Under the pieces are notes generated by a model. The model ran no database searches. It had not been told where the DNA came from and saw nothing but the letters and a program-made list of their open reading frames with translations. This document shows, piece after piece, positions 15,101-59,679 of a DNA stretch of 64,000 bases. Positions within the stretch are counted from its first letter, which is position 1; each line of letters opens with the position of its first letter. Source of the stretch: Macrostomum lignano (taxonomy: Eukaryota); the NCBI GenBank assembly GCA_002269645.1, contig NIVC01000920.1, positions 345,685 through 409,684 of the forward strand. Reading direction: 5' to 3'. The position numbers and the translations under genes are program-made.

Positions 15101-18100
15101 CTCCCCTCTTGTCTTCTCCCCGTCTCCCTCTCGTCTTCTCCCCGTCTCCCTCTCGTCTTCTCCCCGTCTCCCTCTCGTCTTCTCCCCGTCTCCCCTCTTG
15201 TCTTCTCCCCGTCTCCCTCTCGCCTTCTCACCGTCTCCCTCTCGTCTTCTCCCCATCTCCCCTCTCGCCTTCTCACCGTCTCCCTCTCGTCTTCTCCCCG
15301 TCTCCCCTCTCGCCTTCTCTCCGTCTTGCTCACTATCAAGCTCAATTGAACTCCATCTCAGGGCGACGTGTTCAAACTGACGCTGGAAACAGACGAAGAC
15401 TTGGTCACGGAGATCCGTCTGAAATACTTCGATACGGTGCCAGTAGCTGCCAGTATGTGCGTCCTCCGTACCGGCTTCCTGTTCGTGGCCTCGGAATTTG
15501 GCAACCACTATCTGTACCAGATCGCTCATTTGGGCGACGACGATGAGCCGACGTTCTCTTCGGCGATACCGCTGGACCAGGGCGACACGTTCTACTTTGC
15601 GCCTAGGCCGCTGCGCAACCTGGTTATGGTTGACGAATTGGATAGCCTCTGCCCAGTGATGGACTGTCAGGTGGGTCTGAGCTGTGCGGCTCAATTATAG
15701 GGCATAGTGTACTTTTGGGTAATTGGTTAGATTAACATTGGCCGAAAGTTTAGTATGTGTTTTAGGGTGAAGTTTTGGCTATGTACTTTAGGGTGAGTTG
15801 TTCTATATGTACTTTAGGGTGAGTTGATGTACTTGAAGGCGAGTTGTTCTATATGTACTTTAGGAACAGTTGTTGGATATGTACTTTAGAGCAACGTGTC
15901 GATACGCTCTTTGCTCAACCCACCGTCCCTTCCCCCCGCAACCCCAGGTGGCGGACCTGGCCCGCGAGGACTCGGCCCAGCTGTTCACCCTGTGCGGCCG
16001 CGGTCCCCGGTCCTCGTTGCGCGTCCTTCGTCACGGCCTGGAGATCAGCGAGATGGCCGTGTCGGATCTGCCCGGCAGTCCCAACGCCGTCTGGACAGTG
16101 AAACGATTCAGCGATGAGGAGTTCGACTCCTACATTGTGGTGTCGTTCGTCAACGCCACCCTGGTGTTGAGCATCGGCGAAACCGTGGAGGAAGTCACCG
16201 ATTCCGGATTCCTGGGCACCACGCCGACACTGCAGTGCGGCCAATTGGGTGCCGACGCTCTCGTGCAGGTGCGTAAACTGAATTGAGAATGTACGCTGGG
16301 ATAGGGCGTCTAATGTACAATTGTTGGAGGGCGTTCTAATGTACGCATGCTGAGGGCAAGAGATTGAACAGATTGAAATGTACACTGGGGGGTAAGACAT
16401 TAAAATGTACATTGGGGTTAAAGAGTTTGTGTAGTGTGTACACTGGGGGTAAGGAGTCAGTGTACATTGGGGTAGGGAGTCAGTGTACATTGGGGTAAGG
16501 AGTCAGTGTACTGGGGTAAGGAGTCAGTGTACTGGTGTAAGGAGTCAATGTACATTGGGGTAGGGAGTCAGTGTACACTAGGCTTAATATTGGACATCTA
16601 TGCCTGATCCCTGCAGGTGTACCCTGACGGCATTCGCCACATCCGGGCGGACAAGCGCATCAACGAATGGCGCGCACCTGGTAAGCGGATCATCGCCAGA
16701 TGCGCCGTCAACCAACGCCAGGTGGCCATCGCCCTGGCCGGCGGCGAGCTGGTGTACTTCGAGATGGACGCGGCCGGCCAGCTGAACGAGTACACCGAAC
16801 GGAAGGACATGTCTGCAGATGTGGTCTGCATGGCTCTTGGCCGGGTGCCGCCCGGTGAGCAGCGCTGCCGGTTTCTCGCCGTGGGACTGTCGGACAACAC
16901 CGTCCGGATCGTCAGCTTGGACCCGGCCGACTGCTTGGCGCCGCTCAGCCTGCAGGCGCTGCCAGCGCCGCCTGAGTCTCTGTGCCTGGCTCAGCTGGGA
17001 TCTACTTTGTCAGGTTGGTCTCTGGGGTTTGTCTAGTGCTGAGTTACTGGGGTTTATCTACTGCTGAGTTTCTGGTTTGTCTACTGCTGAGTTTCTGGTT
17101 TATCTAATGCTGAGTTTCTGGTTTATCTACTGCTGAGTTTCTGGTTTATCTACTGCTGAGTTTCTGGTTTATCTACTGCTGAGTTTCTGGTTTATCTAAT
17201 GCTGAGTTTCTGGTTTGTCTACTACTGAGCTTCTTCAGCTCATGATTTCGATTTTTGTCTAACGAGAAAAGTGATTTTCGCTTTATCTCTTATGCCTCTA
17301 CAGACTGCCTGTTACTACTTACAACATAACCATCTCTGTAGTATAAACATAATTCCCTTCCCATTAATTCTCCAATCAGGCGCCGCTCCGGACGCTCCCG
17401 GCGGCGTCAGTGGCGGAGGCGACGTGGGCTGGAGCGCCGGCACGCACTACCTGAACATCGGGCTGCAGAATGGGGTGCTGCTTCGGGCTCTGATCGACCC
17501 AGTGACTGGAGACCTGTCCGACACCCGCACCAGGTACCTGGGCAGCCGGCCAGTGAAACTGTTCCGAGTGTTCGTCCAAGGCTCGGAAGCTGTGCTCGCC
17601 ATCTCCTCGCGATCTTGGCTTTATTACACCTACCAGAGCCGCTTCCACCTGACTCCGCTGTCCTACGGTAGTCTGGAGTTCGCGTCCGGCTTCTCGTCTG
17701 AGCAGTGCCTGGAGGGCATTGTGGCAATAAGTGCCAGCACTTTGCGGATTCTCAGCCTAGAGAAACTCGGCACCGTGTTTAATCAGGTTTGCGCTTATTG
17801 TGTTTTGCTGCTGCAGCTGGCCTGGCTGAGGGCAATAGACAGACAAACACAGACAGGCAGACAGACAGGCACTTAGGAAGACAGACAGACAGACAGACAG
17901 ACAGACACTAAGACAGACAGAAAGACAGTCACTAAGACAGACAGACAGACAGACAGACAGACTGACAGACAGACGGACGCTAAGACAGACAGGCAGGCAG
18001 ACAGGCAGGCAGAAAGACAGACAGAGAGACAGACAGACAGACAGACACTAAGACAGACACTATTACACCATGTGCCCCCTCCCCGCCCGCAGGTGACCTT

Positions 18101-20730
18101 CCCCCTGCAGTACACGCCGCGCCGCCTGCTGCTACACGAGAGCGGCCAAGCCGTGCTTATCGAGACTGAGCACAACGCCTTCACTGAGGACAGCAAGCAG
18201 CAGAAGAAGCGCCAGATTGCTCAGGAGATGCTGGAGCAGGCCGGAGCCGACGGTGACCGATCCGGTGACGCCCAGCTGGTCAGGGAGATGGCCGCCGCCT
18301 TCCTCAGCGAGAACCTGCCAGAGCCAGTGTTTGGCGCACCCAAGCCGGGCGCCGGCATGTGGGCCTCCGTGATCCGCGTGATGCGACCGCTCACTGGCCA
18401 GACTGCTCAGATTATCCGACTACAGCAGAATGAAGCTGCGCTCAGCATCTGCCTGTGCCGGTTCGCCTGCAACCCCATGGAATCCTACCTGCTAGTTGGC
18501 ATTGTCAAGGACATGACCCTGGCGCCCAGGTCCGTTGGCGGCGCCGTCCTGCGAACCTATCGGGTTGTTGGCGCTCTCGAAAGGCTGGACTTTCTGCACG
18601 AGACCGCTGTGGAGGATGCGCCTCAGGCTATGTGCCCCTTTCAGGTGCACGACCGCTTTTATCTACCTGGTTACGAATTGTACCTGTGTTGGGGAGATTT
18701 CTGGGAGAGGGGAGGAGAAGTTTTGGGAGATTTCTGGGAGAGGGGAGGAGAATTTGAGGGAGATTTCTGACTGTGTTGGGATTTGTGGGAGATTTCTGTC
18801 TGTTGGAATGGGATTTGTGGGAGATTTCCGTCTGTGTTGGGATTTATGGGAGATTTCTGTAAAAATAATTTATAATTTTTTCAGGGTCGCGTCCTGGTCT
18901 CAGTCGGTCGCGTGCTGCGAATCTACGATTTGGGCAAGCAGAAAATGTTGCGCAAATGCGAGACCAAAGCCCTGCCCAACTACATTGTGTCCGTAGCGGC
19001 TTTCGGCGACCGCGTGGTCGCTGCCGATGTGCAGGTGAGAAATTGTAGCACACAGTCTGAGCTTAGTAATATTAGTTCATTTCTTGCGTTCCGTAGCAAA
19101 TTATTCCATAAAACTCCAATTATATGCTGGATAAATATCAGTAGCTAATAAGAGTTTAATATTCTGTTCTATTGTTACATTAAAATATTTGATTAATATG
19201 TGTACCATCCTAAGCTGTCGACGTCTTTCTGTTAGAAGTAAGCCGATATGTATCGAAAACAGCATGATAAAGCAGTTTTAGCCATCTACTATTTTGAGAA
19301 GTCTATATGTATCGGAAACAATACGATAAAGCAGTTTTAAGCTCTTTGTTATAAGTCAGCCGAAATGTATCGAAAACAATATGATAAAGCAGTTTTTGTT
19401 TCTCGCTATTTTAAGCAAGCCGATATGTATCGAAATCAGAATGATAAAGCAGTTTTAGCCATGTGCTATTTTAAGTTAGCCGATATGTATCGTGAAACTA
19501 TTTCATTGAGGAATTTTAGTTTCCCTGTAATCCGATATGTCTCGAAAAACATGATAAAGCAGCTTTAGTTTCCCGCTATTTTAAGTAGGCCGATATGTAT
19601 CGAAAACAATATAACCAAGTATCTCAAAACCCTACGCCTGCAGGAGTCGGTCTTCTGGATGCGCTACCGAGCCTCGGACAACCAGCTGCTGGTGTTCGCT
19701 GACGATTCGCTGCCCCGCTGGGTGACCTGCCTGGCCATGCTGGACCAGTTCAGTGTCGCTGTCGGCGACAAGTTCGGCAACATCAGCGTCCTCCGCCTGC
19801 CGCCCGACGCTGTCGAAGACGACGCCGACGATGTTGGCGACCTGGGCTCGGCGCGCGGCTCCCTGTTTGACAGGGGCGGCCTGCTGGGCAGCTCCAGCCA
19901 GAAATGCGTGGCTGAGTGCACCTTCCACGTGGGCGAGGCGCTGAGCAGCCTGCGGAAGACCAGCCTGGTGCCCGGCGAGAACGACTGCCTGCTGTACACC
20001 ACCATCAGCGGATCCGTGAGTGCCGGCTTGGCTGCAGTCTGCCGCACCCCCCTGCCTGCACTACCAGATCCCCACTTTAAACTTCTGACATCATAGATTG
20101 CACTTTAAGCTCCTGGCATCTCAGATATCCCCACTTAAAGCTCCTGGGATCTCAGATCCCCACTTTAAGCTTTTGACATCCCAGATCCCCACTTTAAGCT
20201 CCTGACATCCCAGATCCCCACTTTAAGCTCCTGACATCCCAGATCCCCTCTTTAAGCTTTTGACATCCCAGATCCCCACTTTAAGCTCCTGACATCCCAG
20301 ATCCCCACTTTAAGCTCCTGACATCCCAGATCCCCTCTTTAAGCTCCTGGCCGACCAGATCCACACGCTCTGCTTTTGACACGGATTCCCACTTTTATCT
20401 ATCTAACATCCCAGACCCCTAGCGACAATTGAACCCTCCCTCACTCCTCAGGTGGGCATCGCGCTCCCCCTGGCCAGCAAGGAGGAGCACGACCTGTTCC
20501 AGCACCTGGAGCTGCACCTGCGCTCCCAGCACCTGTCCCTGCTTGGCCGGGACCACCTGCAGTTCCGGTCGATGTACTTTCCCAATCGGCGAGTGATCGA
20601 CGGCGACCTGTGCGAGATGTTCAACAACCTGGAGCCGGCCAGGCAGAAGGAGATTGCCCAGGAGCTGGATCGGACACCCAGCGAGCTGTCCAAGAAGCTG
20701 GAGGACATCAGGACTCGGTTCGCTTTCTGA
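9171..20730 (+). CDS. SF3B3: Splicing factor 3B subunit 3 (SAP130), 11 exons, 1235 aa
   Basis: Exons 9171-9396, 12187-12474, 14079-14485, 15362-15670, 15948-16268, 16617-17013, 17380-17786, 18093-18644, 18885-19034, 19644-20015, 20452-20730. All are GT-AG, phases are consistent and the total is 3708 nt. Hallmark peptides: [110 protein letters not shown] at 20884. Confidence 0.97.
10232..10816. mobile_element. Non-autonomous DNA transposon (MITE, 585 bp) with 8-bp target-site duplication (hAT/P-like)
   Basis: Terminal inverted repeats ccatagtcaggatgatgtacat / atgacatgatcctgactatgg. Identical flanking ccttgata at 10224-10231 and 10817-10824. Clustered subterminal (t)ggcgta motifs. Confidence 0.85.
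10870..11620 (-). mobile_element. Highly decayed RTE/Proto2-like LINE RT fragment in SF3B3 intron 1
   Basis: Minus-strand frames give [25 protein letters not shown], then (after a frameshift) [57 protein letters not shown]. This is the same RT-thumb region as the 7.4-8.3 kb element. Confidence 0.72.
12530..14045. repeat. C-rich minisatellite (cccagtcccagaatcc / ctacaatcc units), SF3B3 intron 2
   Basis: Tandem 15-17-bp units with higher-order repetition. Confidence 0.95.
14530..15325. repeat. Pyrimidine-rich minisatellite (tctccccgtctccctctcgtct), SF3B3 intron 3
   Basis: Tandem ~22-bp units; source of the long SPRLP/RREG ORFs. Confidence 0.95.
15770..15890. repeat. Short minisatellite (atgtactttagggtgagttg), SF3B3 intron 4
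   Basis: 4-5 imperfect copies. Confidence 0.75.
16375..16580. repeat. Minisatellite (gtcagtgtacattggggtaagga), SF3B3 intron 5
   Basis: About 8 imperfect 20-23-bp copies. Confidence 0.85.
17035..17230. repeat. Minisatellite (ctactgctgagtttctggttt(a/g)t), SF3B3 intron 6
   Basis: About 8 copies of a 23-bp unit. Confidence 0.9.
17835..18060. repeat. (AGAC)n microsatellite with taagacagac variants, SF3B3 intron 7
   Basis: Direct reading. Confidence 0.92.
18690..18860. repeat. Minisatellite (gggagatttct..), SF3B3 intron 8
   Basis: Repeated gggagatttctg units. Confidence 0.8.
19240..19610. repeat. ~60-bp tandem repeat (gccgatatgtatcgaaaacaatatgataaagcagtttt..), SF3B3 intron 9
   Basis: 6-7 copies at ~60-bp period. 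Confidence 0.88.
20080..20420. repeat. 29-bp minisatellite (gatccccactttaagctcctgacatccca), SF3B3 intron 10
   Basis: About 10 copies; the same family recurs at 26020-26140 and a derivative at 27530-28340. Confidence 0.92.
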
Positions 20731-21970: not shown

Positions 21971-23887
21971 CTATTCAGGCAGGTGCAGTACAAACTGAAT
22001 CTGGCCATGCGACTGGGTTTTCTCGCATTTGATGGGCTTTCCGCCAACCAGATCTTGCATGCACCTCTGTACCATGTTAGCCAGCTGACGAAAGTCTTCA
22101 ATGCTGCTCAAGTTGGTCTGGCGGATGCGGGGACAATCTTCGAGAACTTTGTGTAGAGCCTGCAGCATCCAGCCACCTGTGTCTGGCCGAGAGTAGGCCA
22201 TGTGCCCTGGACAGCTGGCGAAAAGCGCGGAGCAGCCCGGCACAAGACTTGGCAACGAGCTGCCAGCGGTTGCAGCGTCTTCAAAGCTGAAGACTTCAAA
22301 GCTGAAGCCTTCCAGCCCGGTGCTGAGCTCATCAACACTGTGCCGATAAGCGCCTCTGCAAGCCTGGTAGAAGACTCTGACGTGGCTGGCAATTTTTTTC
22401 AATTTGTTTACCAATTTCGGAAGTTCAACAACTGTTCCGTCTGAGAGGACAAAGCCGTCTTGAGATCCATGGGCCGATATGAACAAGTAAATTTTAATAT
22501 TTGATGACGCATTGGCTGAATGGCGTTTGCATGAATTTAATATGGCCTTGATGAAATCTGAATAGGTGCTTTTTAAGATATTATATCCATGCAGCATGTA
22601 GATGTTGTTTTTTATGCAGCCAAGCATCTCAGAAATTTCTCTGCAGTTCTTAAAATCGGCGTCGCAACCAGACCTATCCGGAAGATTACTCGTACTTCCT
22701 GAGGTGCTGTAGCTCTGCACAAACACGCCCACCGCTAACAGAGTGTTCTGTCCGGACTCTGCGCGTACATGTGCCAGCTCAGCGGGTTCCTCACCCACTA
22801 GCTGGGGTAAGTCTGTAATTTGTGTTTGTCTGTATCCTTGAGGATCCAAACCTCTAGGAATTCCAGTTCCCAGCAGAAATTCAAATCCTACAGCTTGCAG
22901 CAGGCGCACCATGTTGCTCACTCCATGTTGTTCGGTAATAGAAGTCACAGCCCGCTCCAAGTAAATATTTAGCGAATCCCAACCGGAAAATTGGGCATGC
23001 AGTGAATCTGTAGACCTCAAGGCCACTGAAAGCTGCGCTATGTTGAATCTGCTGGACCTGCTGCGGTCTGTGAAAAAGGAGGTTATGGCGAAAACTTAGA
23101 GTTACCCTACTGATAACCATAATTTCCACGACTTTTTAACACTTGGGGAATAGGCAAGATGAACAAGCAGTGCACTTCATCTCTACAAATGAATAAAGTG
23201 AAAACAAGTTAATCAATTACACACCGGTTAAGTGGAAGGCTTGACGTGGCCTTTTTGGGGGAAAATTTCCCAATAGACACGCACAGTTGAAATATTGTAA
23301 CTGACTCCAGGTCAGGCCGCCGATTCCTGGGAATGCAATCGTACAGGTCGCTTTCATGCACTATGCCGCCAAGAACAGGTCGCCCGTCTGCTGTTACCAA
23401 CAGAACATGAAGCAGCCACCTGCTGCCAGAATAATAATTGCATCGTCCAAGTTGTTCCTGACTGCATTTCGGTACTCCTCAAGGCTGCCAATCTGAATTG
23501 CCCGCAGTCTGACTGACGGCATTGATCGTAAGTTACCCAAGGTTTCAACTAGCGGGTGAGGGCTCAGAACAAGTAGTCGCAAAGTGATCGTACTGATTGA
23601 GGCGGCCTCAGCAGGGGGAAGTGAGGCGTCACTTTGCCGTTGCAGGCCTTGCGGCTCTGAAAGGTCATTCGACGTAAAGAAGACGTTGAAAACTGCATTG
23701 GCTTGCAAAAAGGAATCAACTTTTAGTTGCTGGGCAAAAGTCATGCGCACAAACCTGAATGATCTGGCAGCGGAGCAACATTGTCCTCTTCGGGATCGGC
23801 AGAAACGCTCGAGTTTCTGGTCCTGCCGATTGGTGCTGCAGCTTCCGGAGGCAAATTTTCTTTGTTAGAATGGTTTTGCTGGTCCAT
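21971..23887 (-). CDS. Caspase-like protease A (peptidase C14A) with N-terminal degenerate caspase-like domain
   Basis: The catalytic region reads DRSGCDAD, ISAHG..SDG, FYQACRG, ASCPGHMAYSRPDTGGWMLQAL. Proposed exons: 23887-23755 (MDQQNHSNKE..), ~23692-23420, 23390-~23222, ~23067-21971. Joining exons 2 and 3 needs a 29-nt GT-AG intron or a frameshift; the exon 3 donor is uncertain. Confidence 0.82.
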
Positions 23888-26947: not shown

Positions 26948-29455
26948 TCATACAGTATTATTAATATTAATAATATTACTCATTATACTATTGTATATTA
27001 TTGTCAATATTATTGGTACTTGTAACATTTTTATTATTATTAGCATTATTAATTTTTCAGCATAAGCTACTCGGGGGTAACACTTTTTTATTATTCCATT
27101 AAATTCATGATCAATTCCATATCCATCAATATAATTCAGCCTTTTTTGGATTTTTTGAGCTAAGCCAGCAATACTCGTATTGTTATTGAATAATCGGTAA
27201 CCGTAAAAACAGAGTACATACCGCACGGCCATCAGCAACCGGCTGCCGTCCTTCTCCTGCCATCGGCTGACGTAGCCGCTCTGGCTGCTGTAGATCACCG
27301 AGCAGTTGAGCCGCAGCTCCAGTGGCAGTGAGGCTCCGTCTCCAGCTTCACCGTCTCCATCGTCTCCAGAGTCGAGCGCTGGGTCCTCTTGCTTCACGAA
27401 ATGCTCTTTGGTGCCTCGACAAGCATGGTAAAATGTCAGAACCTCGTGCTGCCCTTGACAGTTGGTTCCAAAGCTCTTGATTCTTGCTTCGATCGGTCCC
27501 ATCCCCAGACTACCAGCCTCCATCACATTCCCAGATCCCGCAATATACTCACGCAATTTGACATCAAAGATCTGACATCCTCCTCATCACATCCCAGATC
27601 CCTACTCCCAATCCCTACTCCATCAAAGATACCCACTTCTCACATCCCAGATCCCCGCTCCTCACATCCCAGATACATCCCAGATACCCACTCCTCACAT
27701 CCCAGATCCCTACTCCAAACATCAAAGATACATCAAAGATACCCGCCCACTCCTCACATCCCAGATCCCTACTCCTAACATCAAAGATACCCGCTCCTCA
27801 CATCCCAGATCCCTACTCCTAACATCAAAGATACCCACTCCTCACATCCCAGATCCCTACTCCTAACATCAAAGATACCCACTTCTCACATCCCAGATCC
27901 CCGCTCCTCACATCCCAGATACCCACTCCTCACATCCCAGATCCCTACTCCAAACATCAAAGATACCCGCTCCTCACATCCCAGATCCCTACTCCTAACA
28001 TCAAAGATACCCACTTCTCACATCCCAGATCCCCGCTCCTTGTATCCCAGATACCCACTCCTCACATCCCAGATCCCTACTCCTAACATCAAAGATACCC
28101 GCTCCTCACATCCCAGATCCCTACTCCTAACATCAAAGATACCCACTCCTCACATCCCAGATCCCTACTCCTAACATCAAAGATACCCGCTCCTCACATC
28201 CCAGATCCCTACTCCTAACATCAAAGATACCCACTCCTCACATCCCAGATCCCCACTCCTTACATCCCAGATCCCCACTCCTCACATCCCAGATCCCCGC
28301 TCCTCACATCCCAGATCCCCGCTCCTCACATCCCCACTTTTAGCTTGCGATTGTAGATCGTACTGTTCATTGTTATATTCCTAAGGCATTGAGACATTCA
28401 CAAGTGCCACTTACTTTGACCTGCTTCCAGAGCATTTAGCGACTGATGATTATCCTTGACTTGTGACACTCCTTTGCGCTTATTGCCGATTAGAAATCCG
28501 CTGTGGAATTTAGAATTCAAATGGCATTCAATCTCTTTTTTGCACAGTATTAAAAGTTTTACCATCAAAACTACGTGCTACATGTATCAGATATCAAAGG
28601 AGATTCGCCGGAAGGCAGCAACGCAGGCACACGGAAGGGGCGACTTAAATGATTTTTGTTTGAGAAGGCGCACAACAAAAAGTTGGCCTGTGTTCTTGAA
28701 TTTCGTGTGCCTGCGTTGCTTCGCTCCAGCAATGCAAAAAAATGTCAGATGGATTCCACCTTTGATAATTTTGCTGCTAATTAACTCTGCTGACAGAATT
28801 CTCCCAGCAAAAAAGTTTTGGCAAGACCTTAGAGTCAGCCTCACGCTTTAAGTTGAACATGTTCCTAACGCATGAACAATAATAAGCTTCGTCGCTGGCG
28901 TTTGGGGCATTGTGCACGAAGGTATGACGAATGCGCTTCCATTTTTAGAACTGACGCTTGCACCCAAATGAGACCTACTCTGATTACAAAAACTTTCTGC
29001 ATAGTCTTCTCAGTCTCCTCTAACAAACTGCATTCCCTGCTCACGAGGGGAACATGAAGTTGAATGGCCCAAGAGATTTTCTAAAAGGTTTGGTCTTCCA
29101 AATTTTACTATTTCAATTGGGCCTTAAAAAAGAATGAAGTACACTTTCGAGGGTAGGCTACAAGAAAGTCTTGAAAATTCCCATGTTTCCTACTATACTC
29201 ATGCAGCTTAAGCAACAAATGATTTTCCCCCATCAGAAGTACTCACGCTGTATTCGTTTTTTTCTGTTGCTCATTGTGCTTAGTAGCTTCAAACTCGGCT
29301 CGAAGCTCTTCAAGCGATCGAAGCCGCCCGACATCCACCAATTCCTGGGGCCGCTCCGACGCCACTTTGTGACGCCGAAGCGGCCCCTGAAAGTTTGAAT
29401 CGTTATTGGAGTTAAGCCTTATAGGAGTTTGTTCGGTTTGCTCAGATTTGCTCAT
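26948..29455 (-). pseudogene. Caspase-like gene C, degenerate/interrupted
   Basis: The 3' ORF has TFYHACRG and SVIYSSQSGYVSRWQEKDGSRLLMAV (p10-like). Upstream pieces LVDVGRLRSLEELRAEFE (29455-29248, ending at a gtgagt donor), KLIIVHA, FFAGRILSAELI, GIHLTFFC and GFLIGN match the N-terminal domains of paralogues A and B. No SAHG segment was found and I could not build a continuous frame. Confidence 0.68.
27530..28340. repeat. Minisatellite (ctcctcacatcccagatcc / ctaacatcaaagatacc) inside caspase-like gene C
   Basis: Tandem ~19-40-bp units related to the SF3B3 intron-10 family (catcccagatcc core). Confidence 0.92.
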
Positions 29456-29526: not shown

Positions 29527-32500
29527 TGTGCATTACGGGGTTGGCCTCTTTCCATTTCTCTGTCATTCTATATCGGCGTACATTCAACTCTCTAACCATG
29601 CACGCGCCAACCCCCATTGAAATACACGCATCGGCATTGACTCGTGATTAGGACTTTGCTATCGGTATCGATCCAAACAAATTCACACGACTTATCAGAG
29701 TTCCTACAGTGGCGTCGCAAACACACAAACCTACGCGAGGGCAATGGCCACTAGCTACGTTTCTCTGCCCCCACCAGAGCCGTTCTCAATTATCAGCGAC
29801 CCTCACAATGCTGGCAAACGCTGGAGCGAGTGGTCAGCACGCTTTCAAGATTGCATTGACGCTTCTGCCCCCGCCAGCTGAAGGGAATCAGACCACACTC
29901 GACAACACGCTAAATGCTTTAAAGGATTTCTTTAGAGAGAAAGAACATCGTCTTCGCTCGATACCAATTTAGGAACTGCATCCAGCAACAAGGAGAGAAA
30001 ATCGAAGCTTGGTATTCACGAATGCGTGCTTCAGCCGAGGCTTGTGAGTTCGAAAATCTGAAGGACTCCCTTATCAGAGACCAGCTTGTAGCGACCTGTA
30101 CATCAGACAAGTTGCGACGGCGGCTACTCCAAGAGACCAACATTTCCTTGGACGAAGCCCTGCGAAAAGCGAGAGCGTTTGAAGCAGCGGAGGAGCAGGC
30201 ATCGGAGATGGAGTAGACAGATTCGCAGGTGGCAAGCGTTACAAGATCCAACAAGCCCCGGATGAACGGACGCGAAGCATCCAGCACCGCCAGCAGCAGC
30301 AGCAGCAGCAGCAGGCAGTCTCAACAGCAGACATGCTACCGCTGCGGAGAAAAAGGTCACTCTACATGCGACTTGGCGAGAGGAAAAATCTGCCTCAACT
30401 GCGGAAAAACCAATCACCTAGCCAAAGCATGCCGCAAAGCACGCTCGAGTAACAACACGATTCGATCGCAAGTCAGCGCTAACCTAGTGAGCACCTCACC
30501 GGAGCCAAACCTCGACACTAGCATTGGCGAAGACGTTTTTCGGCCTGTGCAAATACAGCAGCTTCCCAGCAGACGTCTCGTTAACTGTCGAAATCGGAGA
30601 CTGTAAGCTACCGATGATGCTGGACAGCGGAGCCAGCTGCAGTATCATGAGCATCAAAACATTCCGACAGCTGGCCGATCAGCGAATTCGAACCACCAAG
30701 GTAAAAGTTCATGCATATGGAACGCCCGAACCTCTCAAAATCATCGGTACTGCGAGCTTAGGCATCAAAATAGGTACCGCTAGCGCAACTGTGCCCTTTC
30801 ACGTTCTCGACGGCGACGGTCTAACGATACTCGGACGCCAAGCTGCCTTTGAGCTAGGAATCCTGCTTATCCAGCGGCCAATTCTCAGCCAGACAGAAGA
30901 TGTCAACTCCAACGTCAAAGCAGCCGAGGGGTATAAAAGCCAGAACATTCAGGACATCTTGCATCAGCACAAAAAAGTATTTGATGGAATCAGATGCATC
31001 AAAGGCGTGCAGGTCGAAGTTCAGCTGTCGGACAACGCGGCCCCGGTGTGTCATCCGCTAGCCCGAGTTGCGGCGCATCTCCGAGAATCTGTCGTCAAGG
31101 AGCTGAAAGACCTAGAAAGGCAAGATATCATCGAGCCAGTAAAAGGACCCTGCGCGTGGGTGGCCCGCATGGTAGTATTGTAGTTCCAAAGGACGATGGC
31201 GGAGTCCGAATCTGCCAGGACCTGCGCAACCTAAACGCCCATGTCATCCCTGAAAAACAACAAATACCGACATTGGACGAGGTCACCGAGGAGATGTCCG
31301 GAGCCAAGCTGTTCAGCGAGCTAGATATTCGTAAAGCCTTTTACCAGATCCCAGTGCACGAGAACAGCCGACACCTTTTCACATTTAGCATTTAGCCGCT
31401 CGGACTAATGCGTCTCAAAAGACTGAGCATAAGTTTTACGAATGCATCCGAAATCCTACAAAGAGTCATGCTCGGCGTGCTCAGCGGAATCGATGCTGTT
31501 CGATGGTCCACGACGATGTCATCGTATACGCTTCGGACCTGCAAGAGCACTGCAAAAGACTCGAAGCCTGTCTGCAGCGTCTCGAAGAATTCGGCATTAC
31601 GCTAAATAAAGAAAAGTGCAAAATCGCCGTCCCCGCTGTCGAGTTCCTAGGAATGCACCTATCTGCAAAAGGAGTGCAGCCTGCTAATGAGAAGACCGAA
31701 GCTATGAAGCACTTCAGACAGCCGACCAGCGTATCCGAAGTTCGCTCGTTCCTAGGCACAGCAAACTTTCTGGCGAAATTCATACCTAACTTCGCTGATG
31801 TCTCCGCACCGCCGCGCAAATTAACAAAGAAAGGGGAGACATTCGAGTGGACTGCCAGCCACTCAAAAGCCTTCGAAGAGATCAAATCGATCATCTGTAA
31901 GGAAGAAACTCTTGCCTTTTTCGACCGCAAACACCAAACAGAGCTTATAGTTGACGCATCGCCAATCGGACTTGGTGCGATTCTGACACAAAAGCAGCCG
32001 GACGGAATCTGTAGACCAGTGGCTTACGCCAGCAGAGCGCTGTCACAAGTTGAGCAGCGGTACGCCCAGATTGAGCGGGAGGCGCTGGCTATCAAATTTG
32101 GCTGCTTAAAGTTCGAAAACTACCTGGCTGGTGGTCCAAGTTTTACAGTGGTGACCGACCACCGACCGGTCCTGCCACTCTTCAGACCGGGATCCCGCCC
32201 GCCACCACGGATTGAACGCATGGTTCTTCGGATTCAACACCTCCGCTTCAACTTGGTGTACAGACCGGGGCCGTCCAACCCAGCTGATCTACTAAGCCGC
32301 CAATCGCTTCCAGAGCTCAGGAAAAACTGGGGAGAGGTCTTCGACACCGCATACGTCAACGCTGTATCAACAGGAGCCGTGCCAAAAGGTTTCAGTGCGG
32401 AACAAATTCGAGACGCAGCAAAGACAGACGCAGGAATTCAAGCCGCGCTGTGCGCCATCAAGACAGGAAACTGGAACACACACGACTCGGTACAACGCGC

Positions 32501-33452
32501 ACTAAAAGCCATCAGCAGCGAACTGACAGAAGACAATGGAATGCTACTTCGAGGAGACCTCATTGTCGTCCCAGAGTCACTACGGAGACCAATTTTGCAA
32601 CTGGCCCACACCGGACATCTTGGTGCCAATCGAACACTCAAGCGTCTGCAGACCAAAGTCTGGTGGCCAGGGATGCGCAGCGATTGTGATGTCTTCGTGA
32701 AATGCTGCATTCCTTGTCAAGCGTCGGACACTCGTACAAATCAGACACCTTTGAGACCGACAAAGTTACCCGAGGGTCCCTGGCAGCAACTTGGAATGGA
32801 CTTCTTCGGACCTGTCCAAGGCCAAATGCTTCTAGTTACTACGGACCTGTATTCTAAATACCCGGAGATCAACATTTTGAGCTTGACAACAGCAGAGAGT
32901 GTAAAACCGCATCTGAGGAGATCAACCTGCCTCTGCCGGCCAACCTGCCTCTGCCGGCCAGCCTGTCTCTGCCGGCCAGCCCGCCGGCCAGAGGGACTTC
33001 CTTGCCTTCAGGAGGCGTCCGCGTGAGGCTACAGAGGGGCCGAAAATTTATAAATGACAAGCGCTGTTTGAATCTCAAACTGAACTGACAACAACAATAT
33101 TATTTTTATTCCCGTCAACTGATTTACTGACAATAACAATATTTTATATTTCCGTCAGCTGTTATTTTTATTCCTCATCATTTTTTCCTTAGGGGGGAAG
33201 AATCGTAGGCTTGCGCCTTAGCAGTTCTCAATGTTTACTAGCTATTGAGTATTTGTGTGCATTACGGGGTTGGCCTCTTTCTATCTCTCTCTGTCATTCT
33301 ATATCGGCGTAAATTCAGCTCTCTAACCACATGCACGCGCCAACCCCCCATTGACTAATATTTAAATACACGCATCGGCATTGACTCGTGATTAGGACTT
33401 TGCTATCGGTATCGATCCAAACTAACTCACACGGCTTGTCAGAGTTCCTATA
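29527..33452 (+). mobile_element. Ty3/gypsy LTR retrotransposon (two-CCHC-knuckle, Mag-like), decayed
   Basis: LTRs at 29527-29708 (ends CA) and 33256-33452; PBS-like tggcgtcgc at 29710; PPT aggggggaagaa at 33191. Gag from ATG 29744 (LPPPEPF..WSEWSARF; CYRCGEKGH..C, CLNCGKTNHLAKAC), protease LDSGAS, RT (FYQIPV, HDDVIVY), RNase H (VDASPIGLGAIL), integrase zinc finger (AHTGH..CIPC) and the start of the core (GMDFFGP), truncated at ~32910. Multiple stops and frameshifts. Confidence 0.93.
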
Positions 33453-34644: not shown

Positions 34645-36537
34645 TCAGTCCGGTTGACCAGTGCATTCAGGGTTGTTGAGCTCCAGCTGGGCCAGCTCTT
34701 TCGTTGCAGCAGTTGTCCCTCTGGCTCCGCCACCCAAGCCAGTCTCGATGACGAAGTTCTCAAATCCCTGATTCGCGCTGTACTGCGTCTGCACGTAGGC
34801 CGTGTAGGATTTGCCTCTTTGTCGAAGGGGAACGATGCCCAGCTTCAAGAGCTGTCGCAGCTCAGCTTGCAACAAGTCTGCCAGCCTCTTGACAGTGATT
34901 CTGCCACGGCGTCTGACAACATTCAGCAGCGCTCGCGGCATCCAGCTGCCTTTGTGTTGATTCCTGTACGCCTCATAGCCCGCCATGCTGGCGAAGATGG
35001 CAGCAGCGGCCGCCATCTCGGGCGGCAGGGTGCAGCCGGCGGCTTTCGGCGGGCTGACAAATCCCAGGCAGCAAGCAGAAGCCGGTCGGTGATTCTCCCC
35101 GGCCTGAGCAGCGTGAAACCGCGGGCCCCGGCACGCCTGGTAAAACAGCAGGACAAAGCCAGCCAGGTCTTCCACTTTCTTCATCAGATCCTTAATAGAG
35201 ACAATTTTCCCGTCCGATGTTCGAATCCCAGCCTCGCAGCCGTGAGCAGAGATGGCGACAAACAGGCAACGAGGCGTGGTCGACTTGTTACGCCAGTCCT
35301 GAGCGTAACTATCCACAAATTGCAGAGCTTTCTCGGCTGACACGTAGCCATCGTCAGGGCAGAGAGAGCGCACGTTCTCTGATGAACAGCCGAGCTGCCC
35401 CGCAATTTCATCAAAGTTCTCCTTGTCCATTTTAAAACCAGCCCTGTCTTTATCTGTGCTGTCTTTTTCGTACTTGCCGATGATAACAGAAACAAAGGCA
35501 TTCGGCTCCGCCCACTCATAGGAAGGTTTCGAGTTCAGTGCGTAAAGCTGCTCAAGAGGATTGCCTTGGTCGTCAGACACCGTAGGAATCGGCGGAGCTT
35601 CGGCATGCTCGACACTGGCTGCGACCTCAGCTAACTTGCCGCTCGGGACGCCTGACATTCGAAGTTGGGAACACCTGCAGCAGTTGGCAATCCGGTCAGC
35701 CAACCTGTCTGTCGTTACTGACTTGTCCAATGCCTGATGCACATCCTGCCACTGCCAGTTTGGCTCCCCAAAGTTTGGCTTGAGTAGGTAGATCTCGGCA
35801 TTGCAGAGCGTCGGACATTTCGGAGCTTCATCGTCACCGCTACCAGTCTTGCCAACACCCTGTTCGACGCTGCCACTGTACACTTCTGCGCATTCTGTCG
35901 GACAGAGTAAGTAGGCCACTCGAATCTTGATAGGTTCCGAGCTCTGTCTCGAATACAGCGGCTTGTACAGCTCGTCCTCTGTCACAATTTTGCCGCTAAG
36001 CACTGGCTGCATGCAGTTGGCAGTGACGTCAATCTGGTGAACAATCAACGCCTCGCAAGCTTTTTGTGACTTCACGTCAGACATGAACTCTTCAACTGCC
36101 TGATGGTAGCTCTCCACCGAATCGGGCTTTTTAAAATCGAAGTCAAACCGGTTGTTGCGTGATTTTCTGCTCGGAAACTCGACTTGGCTATCTGAGTGGT
36201 GAGTGTCGAGAAACAGCACTGACACTGTCTCAGAAGTCTCGAATTGCGGCAGCTGCGGACAGCTCTGTTGAGTTCTGCTGCATTGATTCTGGTCATTGCC
36301 AGACTCTGAAATGAATTGGAAATTATCATACAATGGAAGTCTTGCCAATGTTAAAAAATAGAATTATCCAGGATGCATTGTAACTTTTCACTTACCTTCA
36401 AGTTCGCAGTCTGGCACTGATGGAGGCCCAACTGCATCTTCTTTGGATGCAACCGCAGTTGCACTGCTCAGCTTCTCATCTGGCTTCACTCCTGACATTG
36501 AATCCTGCAGAGAAGAAAATGACACACTTTCAGACAT
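34645..36537 (-). CDS. Caspase-like protease B (~600 aa) with N-terminal degenerate caspase-like domain
   Basis: Exons 36537-36396 (MSESVSF..; donor gtaagt) and 36305-34645 (acceptor atttcag), phase 1, 1803 nt in total. Motifs: LYALNSKP, DRAGFKMD, VAISAHG..SDGKIV, FYQACRG (Cys codon 35131-35133), FASMAGYEAYRNQHKGSWMPRAL. The start could alternatively be the ATG at 36498. Confidence 0.92.
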
Positions 36538-37922
36538 GGCTAATCTTGGAATTAACTTAACTTTCTAGGCTTTAGCAGCAGAATTTATACAGTTGTGATC
36601 TTGTTTTGCTTTGGTTAGAAAGCTATTTCTAATATTGAGCATTTGCTTTATAATTATATAATTATATAAAATGTACAATGTCTATTTGTATAGCTATATA
36701 TTTATAGCTATTAGCTATTATTTACAAAGAACTAAGGTGTTGTTGCATTATTACCAATGACTCACAACATAATGTGCACATTGATCTATAAATAAGTACT
36801 TTTAGTTGCAATGTAATACACTTTTTGAACATTATAGACAAGTTCCTTGTTATATTTATAAATTATAATCACCTATCCTCCAGCTCTAGAAATTACTCAT
36901 GGGCAAAGGTATACAAGGATGTTAATATGTAGAAGCCAGACTTGATGTGTGTATTTTAAGAAAATAATTAGACAACTTAAGAGATGAAAATCCACTAAAT
37001 AATCCCTTTTATCCTTGCATACTTTTATAGACAGTATAATAAATCTGGGGTCTAATTTTGGTTAATTTTGTAAACACCTTTTTAAAATGTGTATTTATAA
37101 CTTACCAATGCTAAATCCGTAGGCAACATCGGTGCATTGTGGTGATTGTCCTGATTGATACTCATTGTCGCTGTTAGTGTGATTTTATTTAGAGTCAGAG
37201 TTTAATTTCAAACTCGACTTTGTATTTTTGAACTAAGATGCTGGCATTTAAAACTGTTCTATTTTTTCTGTTTTAGTAACGGCCGTAGTAAAACAATTTT
37301 AACTCTATTGTATTTTTTTTGGTAGCAGCAACAATACACAATACACAAATATTATTTATTTTTAAACTGTAAGCCTGACTTAAATGTATTCGATTGTCCA
37401 AACTTTTTATTACGACGAAATTGCCGAATATTCGTACATACAGAAACGCATGGACTATATCGCATAGATACAACTTTGCCAATTTTTCACGTTCCCCAAG
37501 ACGTTTTTACATCTCTGCGTCTTAAGATATAGTCCTGAAGAGTACTGAACATTATACTAAGTATAAAATTCGATTCAAGCAGACTAAATGAAACTACTAC
37601 TCTACTGGGCGACTGATCGAGTGCAATGAATAATTTCTGCCCTCCAGATAAAAGGTTTTAGAAAGTCGAGTCCATCATGCATAATGTTTCAAAACAGATA
37701 TAACTGCTTTACACTCATATCCTTCCAAGTTTATTATTCAAGAAGCAGGCATATTGCATTGATTTATTGGCATAGAACGGAGATTTGGAGATTTGGCAGA
37801 TGACAAGATTTTTAATGAAATTCAAACTCAGCAACATTAATAATACGAGGTCCAACATGCAAATACATACTTATATTACAGTACAAAATTATAGGCTCGG
37901 TTGAGTTGCCAAGCTACAGTTG

Positions 37923-40004
37923 CTAAGGCAGTTCGTTGGCGATCGTGCTAAGTCTGGCCGATGAGGCTTGGGATGATGACGCGTTGCTATTGGTTACCGG
38001 ACTGAGGGACTGGAATAGTTGAGTGAGCGATGACCGTTTTGAGATTGTTGGCTTTCGTAATCCCATCATTTTACCCATCCTCAGAATTCTCCATCTTCAG
38101 CTAAAATTTCCCATCCTCAGAATTCCCCATACTCAATTCCCCATCCTCAGAATTCCCCATCCTCAGAATTCCCCATCGCAGAATTCCTCGAAATTCCCCA
38201 TATCTCCAGACTCACGTCAGCACTGGCGCCTCCGAGTTCGGACTCCAGCGACCCTTTGGAGCGCATACGCTTGTTGGCGAACCACTTCTTCACCTGGGAA
38301 TAGGTCAGCCCGGTGGCCAGGGCTAGGGCCTTGGTGTCCTCGGCACCAGGGTAGGGTCGGTCGCGATGCTGGAGGAACCACCGCAGCAGGTGGTCATTCT
38401 GACTGCTGCTGAAGTTCTGCCTCATCTGCTGCTGTTGCTCCAGCGGCTCCTCGGATAAAATTGGTTTTGGTTGCTGAGGAACAGCGCTTTCTTCTGCCGG
38501 CCGCTTTTTCGTCTTCAAGCTCAGATCCAAAGCTGTTTCCGCCTGTTTGGGAGTTGCGAGATCGAATTTTCTAGAGTGCCTTTCCCTTAGTGTCACTCCA
38601 ATGTCCTGCAGTGTCACTCCAATGTCCTGCAGTGTCACTCCAATGTCCTGCAGTGTCACTCTCTTCCTCAGTGTCACTCTCTTCCTCAGTGTCACTCTCT
38701 TCCTCAGTGTCACTCTCTTCCTCAGTGTCACTCTCTTCCTCAGTGTCACTTTAATGTCCTGCAGTGTCACTCTACTCTCCCTCAGTGTCAATCTACCCCC
38801 CCCTGAGTCTCCCAATCTGAATTTCGACTAACCTGGCAACCGAAGTTAAAGTTGTTGCTAATGACGCCAAGAACTCCGCACGGGAAGCCGAATGGTAAAA
38901 AATATGATTTTGCATCTGCAGTTGGAAGCTGAGTCTGCTCCATCAGATGGGGTCGCTTGCTGGAGTGCGGAAGCTGCGGCAGTCCTTGGCACTTCTCTGA
39001 CTGGCTGGTGACTTGTTCGCCGTTCAGAGCCAGCGGAATTCGCTCCTGCAATGAAATTACAGCAACAGAGCGGTGATTTTCTGGCTACTAATAGTAATGT
39101 AAATCAGTTCATTAGAATGAATGACATGGGTTCAAGTGCGATGGTAGCTGTGGGATGGGGCTGTGGGATGGGGCTGTGAGGCTGTGGGATGGTGCTGTGA
39201 GGCTGTAGAATGGTGCTGTGGGATGGGGCTGTGAGGCTGTAAAATGGGGCTGTGGGATGGGGCTGTGGGATGGGGCTGTGAGGCTGTAAGATGGGGCTGT
39301 GAGGCTGTGGGATGGTGCTGTGAGGCTGTGGAATGGTCTGTGGGATGGTGCTGTGAGGCTGTGGGGTGGTGCTGTGAGGCTGTGGAATGGTCTGTGGGAT
39401 GGTGCTGTGAGGCTGTGGGATGGTGCTGTGAGGCTGTGGGATGGTGCTGTGAGGCTGTGGGATGGTGCTGTGAGGCTGTGAGATGGTGCTGTGAGGCTGT
39501 GGGATGGTGCTGTGAGGCTGTGGGATGGTGCTGTGAGGCTGTGGGATGGTGCTGTGAGGCTGTGGGATGGTGCTGTGAGGCTGTGGGATGGTGCTGTGAG
39601 GCTGTGGGATGGTGCTGTGAGGCTGTGGGATGGTGCTGTGAGGCTGTGGGATGGTGCTGTGAGGCTGTGGGATGGTGCTGTGAGGCTGTGGGATGGTGCT
39701 GTTAGGCTGTGGGATGGTACTGCGAGGCTGTGGGATGATGCTGTGAGGCTGTGGGATGGGGCTTTTTCATACTACTCTCCACTATCAGCAGTAGTCAATA
39801 TAAACTATTTGTATAAATACCAAAAAATCAGGAGCACTGCTGAAGCGCCACTCACCGGTACATGGGATTTTCGCTTCCTCGATCCAATCGGAGTTGAAGA
39901 CCCCGGCGTGTGTGCAGCTCTGTCCGGCGATCTGGCGAACTCCTTCATGACCAGGCTGTGCACCGACTGCTGGCTCTGCTGGGTGAATTCAGCAGAAGGT
40001 GTCA

Positions 40005-43804: not shown

Positions 43805-44995
43805 CTCCTGTCCTGGTTCCTGTCCCCCACTGTCCTGTCCTCTCCTGTCCTCTCCTGTCCTGTCATTTCCTGTCCTGTCCTGTCCTGTCCTGTCCTGTCC
43901 TGTCCTGTCCTGTCCTGTCCTGTCCTGTCCTGTCCTGTCCTGTCCTGTCCTGTCCTGTCCTGTCCTGTCCTGTCCTGTCCTGTCCTGTCCTGTCCTGTCC
44001 TGTCCTGTCCTGTCCTGTCCTGTCCTGTCCTGTCATTTCCTGTCCTGTCCTGTCATTTCCTGTCCTGTCCTGTCATTTCCTGTCCTGTCCTGTCCTGTCC
44101 TCTCCTGTCCTGTCATTTCCTGTCTTGTCCTCTCCTGTCCGGTCCTGTCCTGTCATTTCCTGTCCTGTCCTGTCCTGTCCTGTCCTGTCCTGTCATTTCC
44201 TGTCTTGTCCTCTCCTGTCCGGTCCTGTCCTGTCATTTCCTGTCCTGTCCTCTCCTGTCCTGTCCTGTCCTGTCATTTCCTGTCCTGTCCTCTCCTGTCC
44301 TCTCCTGTCCTGTCATTTCCTGTCCTGTCCTGTCCTGTCCTCTCCTGTCCTGTCATTTCCTGTCTTGTCCTCTCCTGTCCGGTCCTGTCCTGTCATTTCC
44401 TGTCCTCTCCTGTCCTGTCCTGTCCTGTCCTGTCCTGTCCTGTCCTCTACTGTCCTGTCCTGTCCTGTCCTGTCCTCTCCTGTCCTGTCATTTCCTGTCT
44501 TGTCCTCTCCTGTCCGGTCCTGTCCTGTCATTTCCTGTCCTGTCCTCTCCTGTCCTGTCCTGTCCTGTCCTGTCCTGTCCTGTCCTGTCCTCTGCTGTCC
44601 TGTCCTGTCCTGTCCTGTCATTTCCTGTCCTGTCCTGTCCTGTCATTTCCTGTCTTGTCCTCTCCTGTCCGGTCCTGTCCTGTCATTTCCTGTCCTGTCC
44701 TGTCCTGTCCTGTCCTGTCCTGTCATTTCCTGTCCTGTCCTCTCCTGTCCTCTCCTGTCCTGTCATTTCCTGTCCTGTCCTGTCCTGTCCTCTCCTGTCC
44801 TGTCATTTCCTGTCTTGTCCTCTCCTGTCCGGTCCTGTCCTGTCATTTCCTGTCCTGTCCTCTCCTGTCCTGTCCTGTCCTGTCCTGTCCTGTCCTGTCC
44901 TGTCCTCTCCTGTCCTGTCCTGTCCTGTCCTGTCATTTCCTGTCCTGTCCTCTCCTGTCCTGTCCTGTCCTGTCCTGTCCTGCCCTGTCCTCTCC
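43805..44995. repeat. (CCTGT)n pentanucleotide satellite with catttcctgt and tccggtcc variants
   Basis: About 1.2 kb; source of the CPVLS ORFs. Confidence 0.97.
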
Positions 44996-45529
44996 TCCTT
45001 TCGTCTCTCCTCTCTTTTCTCGATCCCTTCTAACTTCTTTCTTCACTTCTCTTCCCTTCTTAGTCAGCCGCCACCATCATCCCTTTACCCCTGGGCCCGC
45101 TGCCAGTCTGCAGTCTGCTGGTCTCACCCCCCGTGATTCTCACACCCGTGCGTGCCAGACTTCGAAGAGCTCATTCTGCAGTCCTGACCCTTGCCCAGCT
45201 ACTCAACAACAGTTCCATCTCGTCCAACTCAAAGCCGTGCTCAACCGGGAGTACGCACAGATGGCATTCGCTGTGTCTGCGCGTACCAAAACGTGATTAA
45301 ACCCAAATCCCGTCGGGTATTGCCGGATTGAGGGGAGGGGTGAACTGCTAGAAACCCAAAGCGACTCAGGAGGAGACCAGAAACACAGAGGAAAGCGAAC
45401 TTGGGCTGGAAGCGTCGGTTGCTGTTCGCTCTTCCCTCCCGCGTCTCGTCTCTCTCGGATGTCGCGGATCCCCGCCTCCCGCCCCAAGTCGAAAATCGCG
45501 CATCCAGTCATCCTTTGCTGGCCTGCCTG

Positions 45530-50535: not shown

Positions 50536-53525
<2,990 letters not shown>

Positions 53526-59310: not shown

Positions 59311-59679
<369 letters not shown>

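Follow-up and report, generated by a model that had tools for sequence, protein, structure and literature searches.

Background

Caspases in which a dead caspase-like domain precedes a live one in a single chain have been described in corals. In Acropora caspase-X, an inactive domain (CASc*), which lacks both the catalytic His and the catalytic Cys, is followed by an active CASc domain; the two were modelled as a β6-β6 pair resembling that of cFLIP and procaspase-8, and deletion of the N-terminal domain raised the killing of HeLa cells (Moya et al. 2016; PMC4715348). The caspase-X family grew by tandem duplication in Acropora (PMC7783167). Here we analyze a candidate for the same layout, gene B of the flatworm Macrostomum lignano, which lies on the minus strand of a 64,000-nucleotide stretch of contig NIVC01000920.1 (positions 345,685 to 409,684; hereafter the window). 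Gene B encodes a caspase domain preceded, in the same open reading frame (ORF), by a region of ~190 amino acids that we call the N-domain.

Related arrangements occur elsewhere. In clan CD, separase and Csx29/TPR-CHAT (CHAT1 followed by CHAT2) have, in one chain, a pseudo-caspase domain immediately N-terminal to the active domain (PMC10028731), and the catalytic unit of gingipain R consists of two tandem caspase-like α/β subdomains, A and B, with activity in B alone (PMC4626109). Four caspases with two CASc domains have been found in Mytilus coruscus, where CASc domains with two p20 subunits and one p10 subunit were also reported (PMC10967218). A survey of lophotrochozoan caspases noted a kinase-prodomain caspase as the only unusual one in M. 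lignano, and the flatworm lineage was reported to lack FADD (PMC11463336).

A first-pass annotation of the window, made from the sequence alone, had proposed that the N-domain is a second, full caspase fold that arose by internal duplication and lost the His-Gly of its dyad, and had considered this architecture undescribed. For long caspase prodomains, a death fold is the prior expectation.

Results

A possible cryptic tandem in a single reading frame

The N-domain of gene B is best explained as a very diverged, non-catalytic caspase-like domain, so that the protein would be a cryptic tandem of pseudo-caspase and caspase comparable to coral caspase-X; we judge this explanation about evenly balanced between right and wrong. 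Most likely, its p20 half is recognizable by predicted structure and its small-subunit half is degenerate.

The gene B ORF (34645..36348, 567 amino acids) matches gene model P0002 (BOX15_Mlig014852g1, a truncated model) at 99-100% identity and its homeologue P0001 (BOX15_Mlig001330g1, 615 amino acids; L002 10861-12539) at 88%. The segment singled out by the first-pass annotation, 35620-36228, is in frame and corresponds to ORF residues 41-243. A distant paralogue, P0003 (PAA74145.1, BOX15_Mlig012038g1, 542 amino acids), is 42% identical to gene B; it is a single-exon, intronless gene on another contig (L001 10001-11629), on the opposite strand within an intron of an ITPR gene. Since P0003 is collinear with gene B over its whole length, the arrangement of N-domain plus caspase domain is kept at three loci (gene B, P0001 and P0003), each with an intact full-length ORF (542-615 amino acids) in which both domains share one continuous frame. 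A gene-fusion artefact was considered and rejected because one exon carries both domains at all three loci. The host gene of P0003 is of the inositol-trisphosphate/ryanodine-receptor type, and no further paralogue was found at that locus. A literature search with the Mlig gene identifiers returned no paper.

Predicted structure of the N-domain

For the first AlphaFold2 (AF2) model we used aligned N-domains alone and left out every caspase sequence. The multiple sequence alignments used for the AF2 models held 3-4 sequences. The N fragments of paralogue A were left out because MAFFT placed one of them on the catalytic domain, and a deeper alignment could not be built because word-indexed searches with gene B and with a seven-row alignment returned P0001 and P0002 only. 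In residues 27-137 of the resulting model the predicted local distance difference test score (pLDDT) is 60-86, and the predicted order of elements is strand, strand, helix, strand, hairpin, helix, strand. When this model was searched with Foldseek against 350,542 PDB chains, each of the 50 best matches was a caspase large subunit (caspase-1, -2, -3, -4 or -11; E values 6e-5 to 2e-3, probability ~1.0, ~10% identity), and no other α/β family was interspersed among them. The caspase-fold matches that the first-pass annotation had expected were thus obtained for the p20-like half.

In an AF2 model of the full chain (mean pLDDT 52), the elements of the N-domain follow the order of those in the catalytic domain, minus α1 and β6 (Table 1); the strand and the two helices of the putative p10-like half also stand in the expected order, at low pLDDT. 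We regard a caspase-like fold of the p20-like half as moderately supported, with structure prediction as the strongest line of evidence, and large-subunit topology is found for the N-domain at the level of the predicted model only. Of the "second, full caspase fold" that had been proposed, the p20-like half is borne out in the predicted model, and the remainder is not: pLDDT in the p10-like region is below 35, α1 is absent and there is no β6.

Sequence register between the two domains

All of the strings on which the first-pass annotation had built its case (VSVLFLD, FDFDFKKPDSVESYHQAVEEF, CEALIVHQ, PVLSGKIVTEDELYK, IRVAYLLC, AEIYLL, QDVHQALD and DRLADRIANC) are present in the gene B ORF. When profiles of the N-domain were aligned with profiles of the family's own C-terminal domain using hhalign, the score was 20 (P 0.055) with three and four sequences and 21.8 (P 0.025) with five, the latter including paralogues A and C in conceptual translation. 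The alignment is collinear over 127-139 columns, and the two top-scoring local segments (P 0.025 and P 0.18) are collinear as well. It pairs SGKIVTEDELYK with SDGKIVSIKDLMK, VAYLLC with LFYQAC, AEIYLL with AAIFAS and TTDRLADRIANC with TVKRLADLLQAE; among the later blocks, WQWQDVHQAL falls on SWMPRALLNV and TTDRLADRIA on TVKRLADLLQ. The register proposed beforehand was therefore recovered by hhalign on its own, at marginal significance (P 0.025-0.055). Column shuffles reached the observed score in 3/200 and 4/250 cases, against a null that is lenient because shuffling columns also breaks hydrophobic patterning. The hhalign signal is suggestive of kinship between the two domains and is not proof of it. 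For the proposed origin by internal duplication, the signal at the sequence level is just P ~0.02-0.05.

The Cys, the His and the proposed loss of the dyad

A Cys near the end of predicted β4 and a His within predicted β3 are the only residues invariant across the five N-domains compared, including the very divergent copies A and C. The Cys (C135) is residue 9 of 10 in its strand, and catalytic Cys392 occupies the same place in the corresponding strand of the protease. The invariant His precedes by 5-6 residues the position aligned to the catalytic His (T-A-N-C, 36013-36024). In the register given by hhalign and by the secondary structure, the catalytic His-Gly is replaced by Ala-Asn (TANC on AHGC). 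The earlier statement that the His-Gly is lost depends on that register, in which it falls on T-A-N, and an invariant His is nearby. In the same register both S1 arginines and the Gln before the Cys are gone from the N-domain, which therefore lacks a canonical Asp pocket. Its CPTEC and NC motifs cluster at the location of a caspase active site. Conservation between gene B and P0003 is highest in the p20-like half and densest at residues 85-120 and 127-139, the C-terminal ends of β3 and β4, which is where the active site of a caspase is situated.

Conservation and rate of evolution

The N-domain is 87% identical to that of homeologue P0001 and 39% identical to that of the unlinked paralogue P0003 (E 1.9e-29). 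An exhaustive phmmer search with ORF residues 15-243 against 1.84 billion representative proteins returned two proteins, gene B's own model and P0003, and hence no relative outside M. lignano. These comparisons indicate a real, conserved, lineage-restricted domain rather than junk.

The ratio of non-synonymous to synonymous substitution rates (dN/dS) was calculated for gene B and P0001 by the Nei-Gojobori method from 23 synonymous and 70 non-synonymous differences. The overall value was 0.87; taken separately, the N-domain gave 0.73 and the caspase domain 0.80, both of them high. The lowest defined value for any region was 0.64, in the p10-like region; for the linker, where synonymous differences are absent, the ratio is undefined. 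The family evolves fast, with constraint on the N-domain that is not below that on the protease, and the divergence of gene B from its homeologue is consistent with relaxed or diversifying evolution after a recent genome duplication. In the C-tail dN/dS is 1.6, over 41 codons only. A loop in the N-domain of P0001 carries a 7-amino-acid duplication (PNFGEPNFGE).

The catalytic domain and the linker

Pfam PF00656 matches gene B at residues 288-501 (E 1.2e-13; score 51.8 bits, cutoff 21.4). The S1 residues are R in DRAGF, Q, and R in AYRN. A profile of the family's C-terminal domain aligned with a caspase-3 profile in hhalign (Prob 96.8%, E 2e-10), with R64, H121, Q161, C163 and R207 of caspase-3 lining up with DRAGF, SAHG, QACRG and AYRN. 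The AF2 model of this domain has pLDDT 70-90, and in Foldseek it matched procaspase-7, CED-3 and Sf-caspase-1 (E 1e-8 to 1e-6, template modelling (TM) scores 0.6-0.7); when the full-chain model was submitted, only the catalytic domain was reported. Gene B therefore encodes a canonical, probably Asp-specific caspase domain with a complete dyad and S1 pocket. Its intersubunit loop contains no Asp, which fits control by conformation or partner contact rather than by intersubunit cleavage.

The linker between the two domains holds TVSDD|Q in gene B and, at the same place in P0003, a repeated ACEL(I/V)D|QPP; these Asp sites are candidate cleavage sites. The tandem repeat of the P0003 linker, QSPVACEL(I/V)DQPPVP, is a duplicated caspase-type xExD site.

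Paralogues A and C

The share of gene B's blocks that the first-pass annotation had reported in paralogues A (SLEEY, FQLC) and C (SLEEL, TFFC), Cys included, proved to be present and collinear. In paralogue A, the caspase ORF is intact (351 amino acids, Pfam E 5.7e-11) and the N-domain blocks NAVFNVFF, SLEEYRNAV, LLHVLLVTADGRPVLGGIVHESDLY and FQLC are scattered among three reading frames; one break, of 1 nt, is near 23421, and there are others. P0003 matches a block of this copy at E 0.018. The N part of paralogue A is either a pseudogenized N-domain or the product of assembly errors or indels. A possible 38-nt GT..AG mini-intron at ~23181-23218 does not restore the frame. Paralogue C retains the N-domain blocks SLEEL, LIIVHALG, SCQNFFAGRILSAELIS and TFFC, and its caspase remnant runs only from FYHACRG to the C-terminus: because it keeps residues 138-269 alone of the homeologue's catalytic ORF, the first ~137 residues, and with them the His-bearing half, are gone. 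At the homeologous locus (L002 14327-17328) the catalytic ORF is intact (16459..17328, 289 amino acids). A minisatellite just upstream of the caspase remnant (44 bp, 13.7 copies) is shorter in L002.

Other features of the window

The remaining features are listed in Table 1. The long minisatellite and microsatellite arrays yield spurious ORFs of up to 1092 amino acids in several frames.

Table 1. Coordinates of gene B, its predicted domains and structural elements, and other features of the window. Element positions refer to the full-chain AF2 model.
Feature	Position	Strand	N-domain residues	Catalytic domain residues	Content or basis
Gene B exon 1	37100..37165	minus			encodes MSINQDNHHNAPMLPTDLAL...; 3' boundary approximate; tblastn with P0002 N-terminus, 95% identity
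Gene B exon 2	36396..36504	minus			encodes DSMSGVKPDEKLSS...PDCELE; tblastn with P0002 N-terminus and reading of the DNA
Gene B intron	36306-36395	minus			between exons 2 and 3; 90 nt, GT..AG; acceptor AG of exon 3 ends at 36306
Gene B exon 3	34645..36305	minus			one continuous coding exon: N-domain, linker, caspase domain, C-tail, stop codon
N-domain, p20-like half	35890..36228	minus			ORF residues 41-153; AF2 pLDDT 60-86, Foldseek; β1 VSVLFLD, β2 RFDFDF, helix SVESYHQAVEEFMSDVK, β3 EALIVHQIDV, hairpin PVLSGKIV, helix EDELYKPLY, β4 KIRVAYLLCP
N-domain His	36037..36039	minus	H90		ORF residue 104; within predicted β3; invariant in 5/5 N-domains
N-domain Cys	35902..35904	minus	C135		ORF residue 149; invariant in 5/5 N-domains
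N-domain, putative p10-like half	35662..35889	minus			strand AEIYLL, helices WQWQDVHQAL and TTDRLADRIAN; low confidence
Interdomain linker	35512..35661	minus			predicted disordered, pLDDT <35
Catalytic caspase domain (C14A)	34771..35511	minus			Pfam, hhalign, Foldseek
Catalytic His	35242-35244	minus			in SAHG
Catalytic Cys	35131-35133	minus		C392	in QACRG; ORF residue 406
β1			28-34	269-275	
α1			not predicted	291-304	
β2			54-59	307-315	
α2			64-80	324-339	
β3			85-95	347-353	
Hairpin			present	present	
α3			110-118	371-381	
β4			127-136	384-393	
β5			170-175	434-442	low confidence in N-domain
α4			186-194	455-464	low confidence in N-domain
α5			199-206	472-488	low confidence in N-domain
β6			not predicted	505-511	
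Paralogue A	21971..23750	minus			caspase ORF and upstream N-domain remnants in other frames
Paralogue A caspase ORF	21971..23026	minus			intact
Paralogue A N remnant	23209..23400	minus			VTADGRPVLGGIVHESDLY...FQLC
Paralogue A N remnant	23394..23750	minus			SLEEYRNAV
Paralogue C	26948..29455	minus			truncated copy
Paralogue C caspase remnant	26948..27556	minus			FYHACRG to C-terminus
Minisatellite	27730-28334				44 bp
Paralogue C N remnant	28587..28844	minus			TFFC
Paralogue C N remnant	29243..29455	minus			SLEEL
Ty3/gypsy-type retrotransposon pol	30524-33026				between paralogues C and B; ORFs fragmented; aspartic protease, reverse transcriptase, RNase H and integrase zinc-binding domain
TALE-class (Homeobox_KN) homeobox gene	38147-38815	minus			directly upstream of gene B; neighbour also at homeologous locus L002 (4621-9241); ORF runs into VTLRKR/VTLQDIG coding-frame repeat
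Ras-family small GTPase ORF	4821-5543	plus			Pfam Ras, E 1.7e-42
RSE1/DDB1/CPSF1-type (SF3B3-like) β-propeller protein exons	14081-18770	plus			
CT-rich minisatellite	14572-15326				22 bp; open in several frames; within the RSE1/DDB1/CPSF1-type gene region
Repeat array	12535-14057				31 bp x 49
Repeat array	43806-44996				15 bp x 79
Repeat array	59311-59679				CTAT x 92
Repeat array	60363-64000				24 bp x 152; runs past the window end
ORF with weak SUEL/rhamnose-binding lectin match	52084-53334	minus			416 amino acids; E 6.7e-5, below Pfam's cutoff

Discussion

Several results weigh against a caspase-like N-domain. No sequence method was significant for it: BLASTP between the N and C halves of gene B returned nothing (best E 0.4); Pfam C14 was not found at E<=10 in the N-domains of gene B, P0001 or P0003, on which only noise (DUF7647, Androglobin_V) appeared up to E 10; the full set of PDB sequences, searched with phmmer and with a profile in hmmsearch, gave no match at E<=10; the hhalign probability against the family's own C-terminal domain is just 1-2%; and against a vertebrate caspase-3 profile it is 0.2%, this profile being shallow because only caspase-3 orthologues of >=50% identity, nearly all ≥69%, came back. 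On the structural side, the N-domain-only model is poor overall (mean pLDDT 45.5) and aligns to caspases with TM scores of 0.39-0.51 on target length and root-mean-square deviations of 5-11 Å. In the p10-like half pLDDT falls to 22-35, and neither α1 nor β6, the canonical dimer interface, is predicted. With a predicted TM score of 0.46, the full-chain model gives no confident interdomain geometry or packing on which the proposed β6-β6 pseudo-dimer in cis could be judged. The high dN/dS of both domains belongs on the same side, as does the fact that neither A nor C is an intact tandem protein.

Negative or marginal searches, low model scores and large deviations would all be met if the N-domain were an unrelated, lineage-specific α/β prodomain whose p20 likeness is generic (a three-layer α/β sandwich with parallel strands) or an AlphaFold artefact, and since shuffled columns lose their hydrophobic patterning, any α/β domain could beat that control. 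We find this account rather doubtful: flavodoxin-, CheY- or TIR-like matches would be expected from such a domain, whereas the 50 best were all caspases; the hhalign register agrees with the secondary-structure correspondence and sets Cys on Cys; and AF2 arrived at the fold from an input free of caspase sequence. A different concern is that a p20-like module alone was duplicated or kept, as an extra large subunit, with the next ~80 residues serving as a linker; the N-domain would then be unable to form a caspase-like pseudo-dimer and would act as some other regulatory or targeting module. The low pLDDT there, the unpredicted β6, the weakness of the second hhalign segment and the Mytilus domains with two p20 subunits and one p10 (PMC10967218) speak for this possibility, which we nevertheless hold to be unlikely, given that the p10-like region is as conserved between gene B and P0003 as the rest (W186, Q187, T198, L202, A203, I206, C209 and C210 are invariant between them), has the lowest defined dN/dS and shows its strand and two helices correctly ordered in the full-chain model.

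Whatever its origin, the N-domain might also be a functionless relic in a decaying, near-neutral gene cluster of a polyploid genome. Part of the family may indeed be decaying, because dN/dS is high in both domains and neither A (frame-broken in its N-terminal part) nor C (without its His half) is whole; the cluster is also interrupted by a Ty3/gypsy element and minisatellites. As an account of the family and its N-domain, decay seems distinctly unlikely: the ORFs of gene B, P0001 and P0003 are intact despite only 42% identity between gene B and P0003, the catalytic and S1 residues are all kept, constraint on the N-domain is at least as strong as on the protease, and the substitution counts behind the dN/dS values are small. 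An adaptor prodomain of a known kind, as in initiator caspases, whether a death fold (CARD, DED or DD) or another, was rejected, and we give it almost no weight; nothing was found in its support, Pfam and the 50 best Foldseek matches contain no death fold, and the prediction is a mixed α/β domain of five or six strands instead of a bundle of six helices. The invariant Cys and His raise one further reading, that the protein is two-headed and its N-domain not dead, bearing a non-Asp-specific cysteine-protease site or a redox- or metal-sensing site of independent, flatworm-specific origin. We consider this very improbable; if true, such a protein could serve as a caspase pseudo-dimer that is complete within one chain and needs no adaptor.

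If the N-domain is instead a diverged pseudo-caspase, it would descend from a duplicated caspase domain, pack in cis on the catalytic domain and regulate it, and its most likely role, by analogy, is that of an in-cis partner restraining or shaping the protease. By the example of caspase-X the effect would most likely be restraint; by that of cFLIP-L and caspase-8, the N-domain might alternatively pre-organize the active site. Cleavage at the linker Asp sites (VSDD|Q in gene B, ACEL(I/V)D|Q in P0003) could then free the N-domain. Transgenesis and RNA interference work in M. lignano, and the family, if so confirmed, would offer a second experimentally tractable model for in-cis pseudo-dimer control of a caspase without death-fold platforms. 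Surveys built on Pfam or SMART prodomains, the lophotrochozoan one (PMC11463336) among them, would then undercount such architectures, because the N-domain is too diverged for domain scans. The finding, moderately supported, is a structural prediction in a lineage-specific, fast-evolving family and introduces no new principle.

Comparison with described systems

The claim that the architecture is undescribed fails, because Acropora caspase-X, with inactive and active caspase domains in one chain, was described and tested in 2016 (PMC4715348). The first-pass annotation had itself named prior annotation in known families as grounds for refutation, and caspase-X and the double-CASc proteins of Mytilus supply this in part. 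The dead-plus-live layout is already described in corals, and the flatworm case would be a more cryptic example of it.

As in caspase-X (AmCaspase Xa-Xd), an N-terminal caspase-like domain would precede a typical active caspase in a single chain without a death-fold prodomain, and the A-B-C cluster in the window parallels the tandem-duplicated coral genes; for both proteins, a pairing in cis like that of cFLIP and procaspase-8 has been proposed. The coral CASc* is recognizable by sequence, whereas the flatworm N-domain escapes both Pfam and HMMER; CASc* has lost both His and Cys, whereas the flatworm domain retains an in-register Cys, with an invariant His nearby; and, set against CASc*, the flatworm domain seems to lack α1 and β6. 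Regulation has been tested in the coral and is drawn by analogy in the flatworm. In cFLIP-L and procaspase-8, a dead caspase-like domain likewise partners a live one and sets its activity (PMC7586951), but there the two are separate polypeptides joined by DED platforms and the homology of the cFLIP pseudo-caspase to caspase-8 is evident from sequence, unlike the single flatworm chain with its diverged N-domain and no death fold.

Separase and Csx29 are analogues, and the flatworm protein is not a member of their groups: they belong to families C50 and CHAT, have other P1 specificities, are very large multidomain proteins and answer to the regulators securin and Cas7-11. Gingipain R differs as a secreted, Arg-specific bacterial protein of family C25. 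The caspases of Mytilus coruscus resemble the flatworm family as lophotrochozoan caspases with a duplicated CASc or extra p20 subunits; both CASc domains of the double-CASc proteins are found by standard scans, and their published description contains no functional or structural work. The N-domain of the flatworm family has apparently been overlooked so far.

In the exhaustive phmmer search the N-domain matched no cnidarian protein, so that common descent with coral caspase-X is undetectable and an independent origin is likely. If the predicted fold holds, flatworms, like corals, fused a dead caspase domain in cis to a live one, and probably did so independently.

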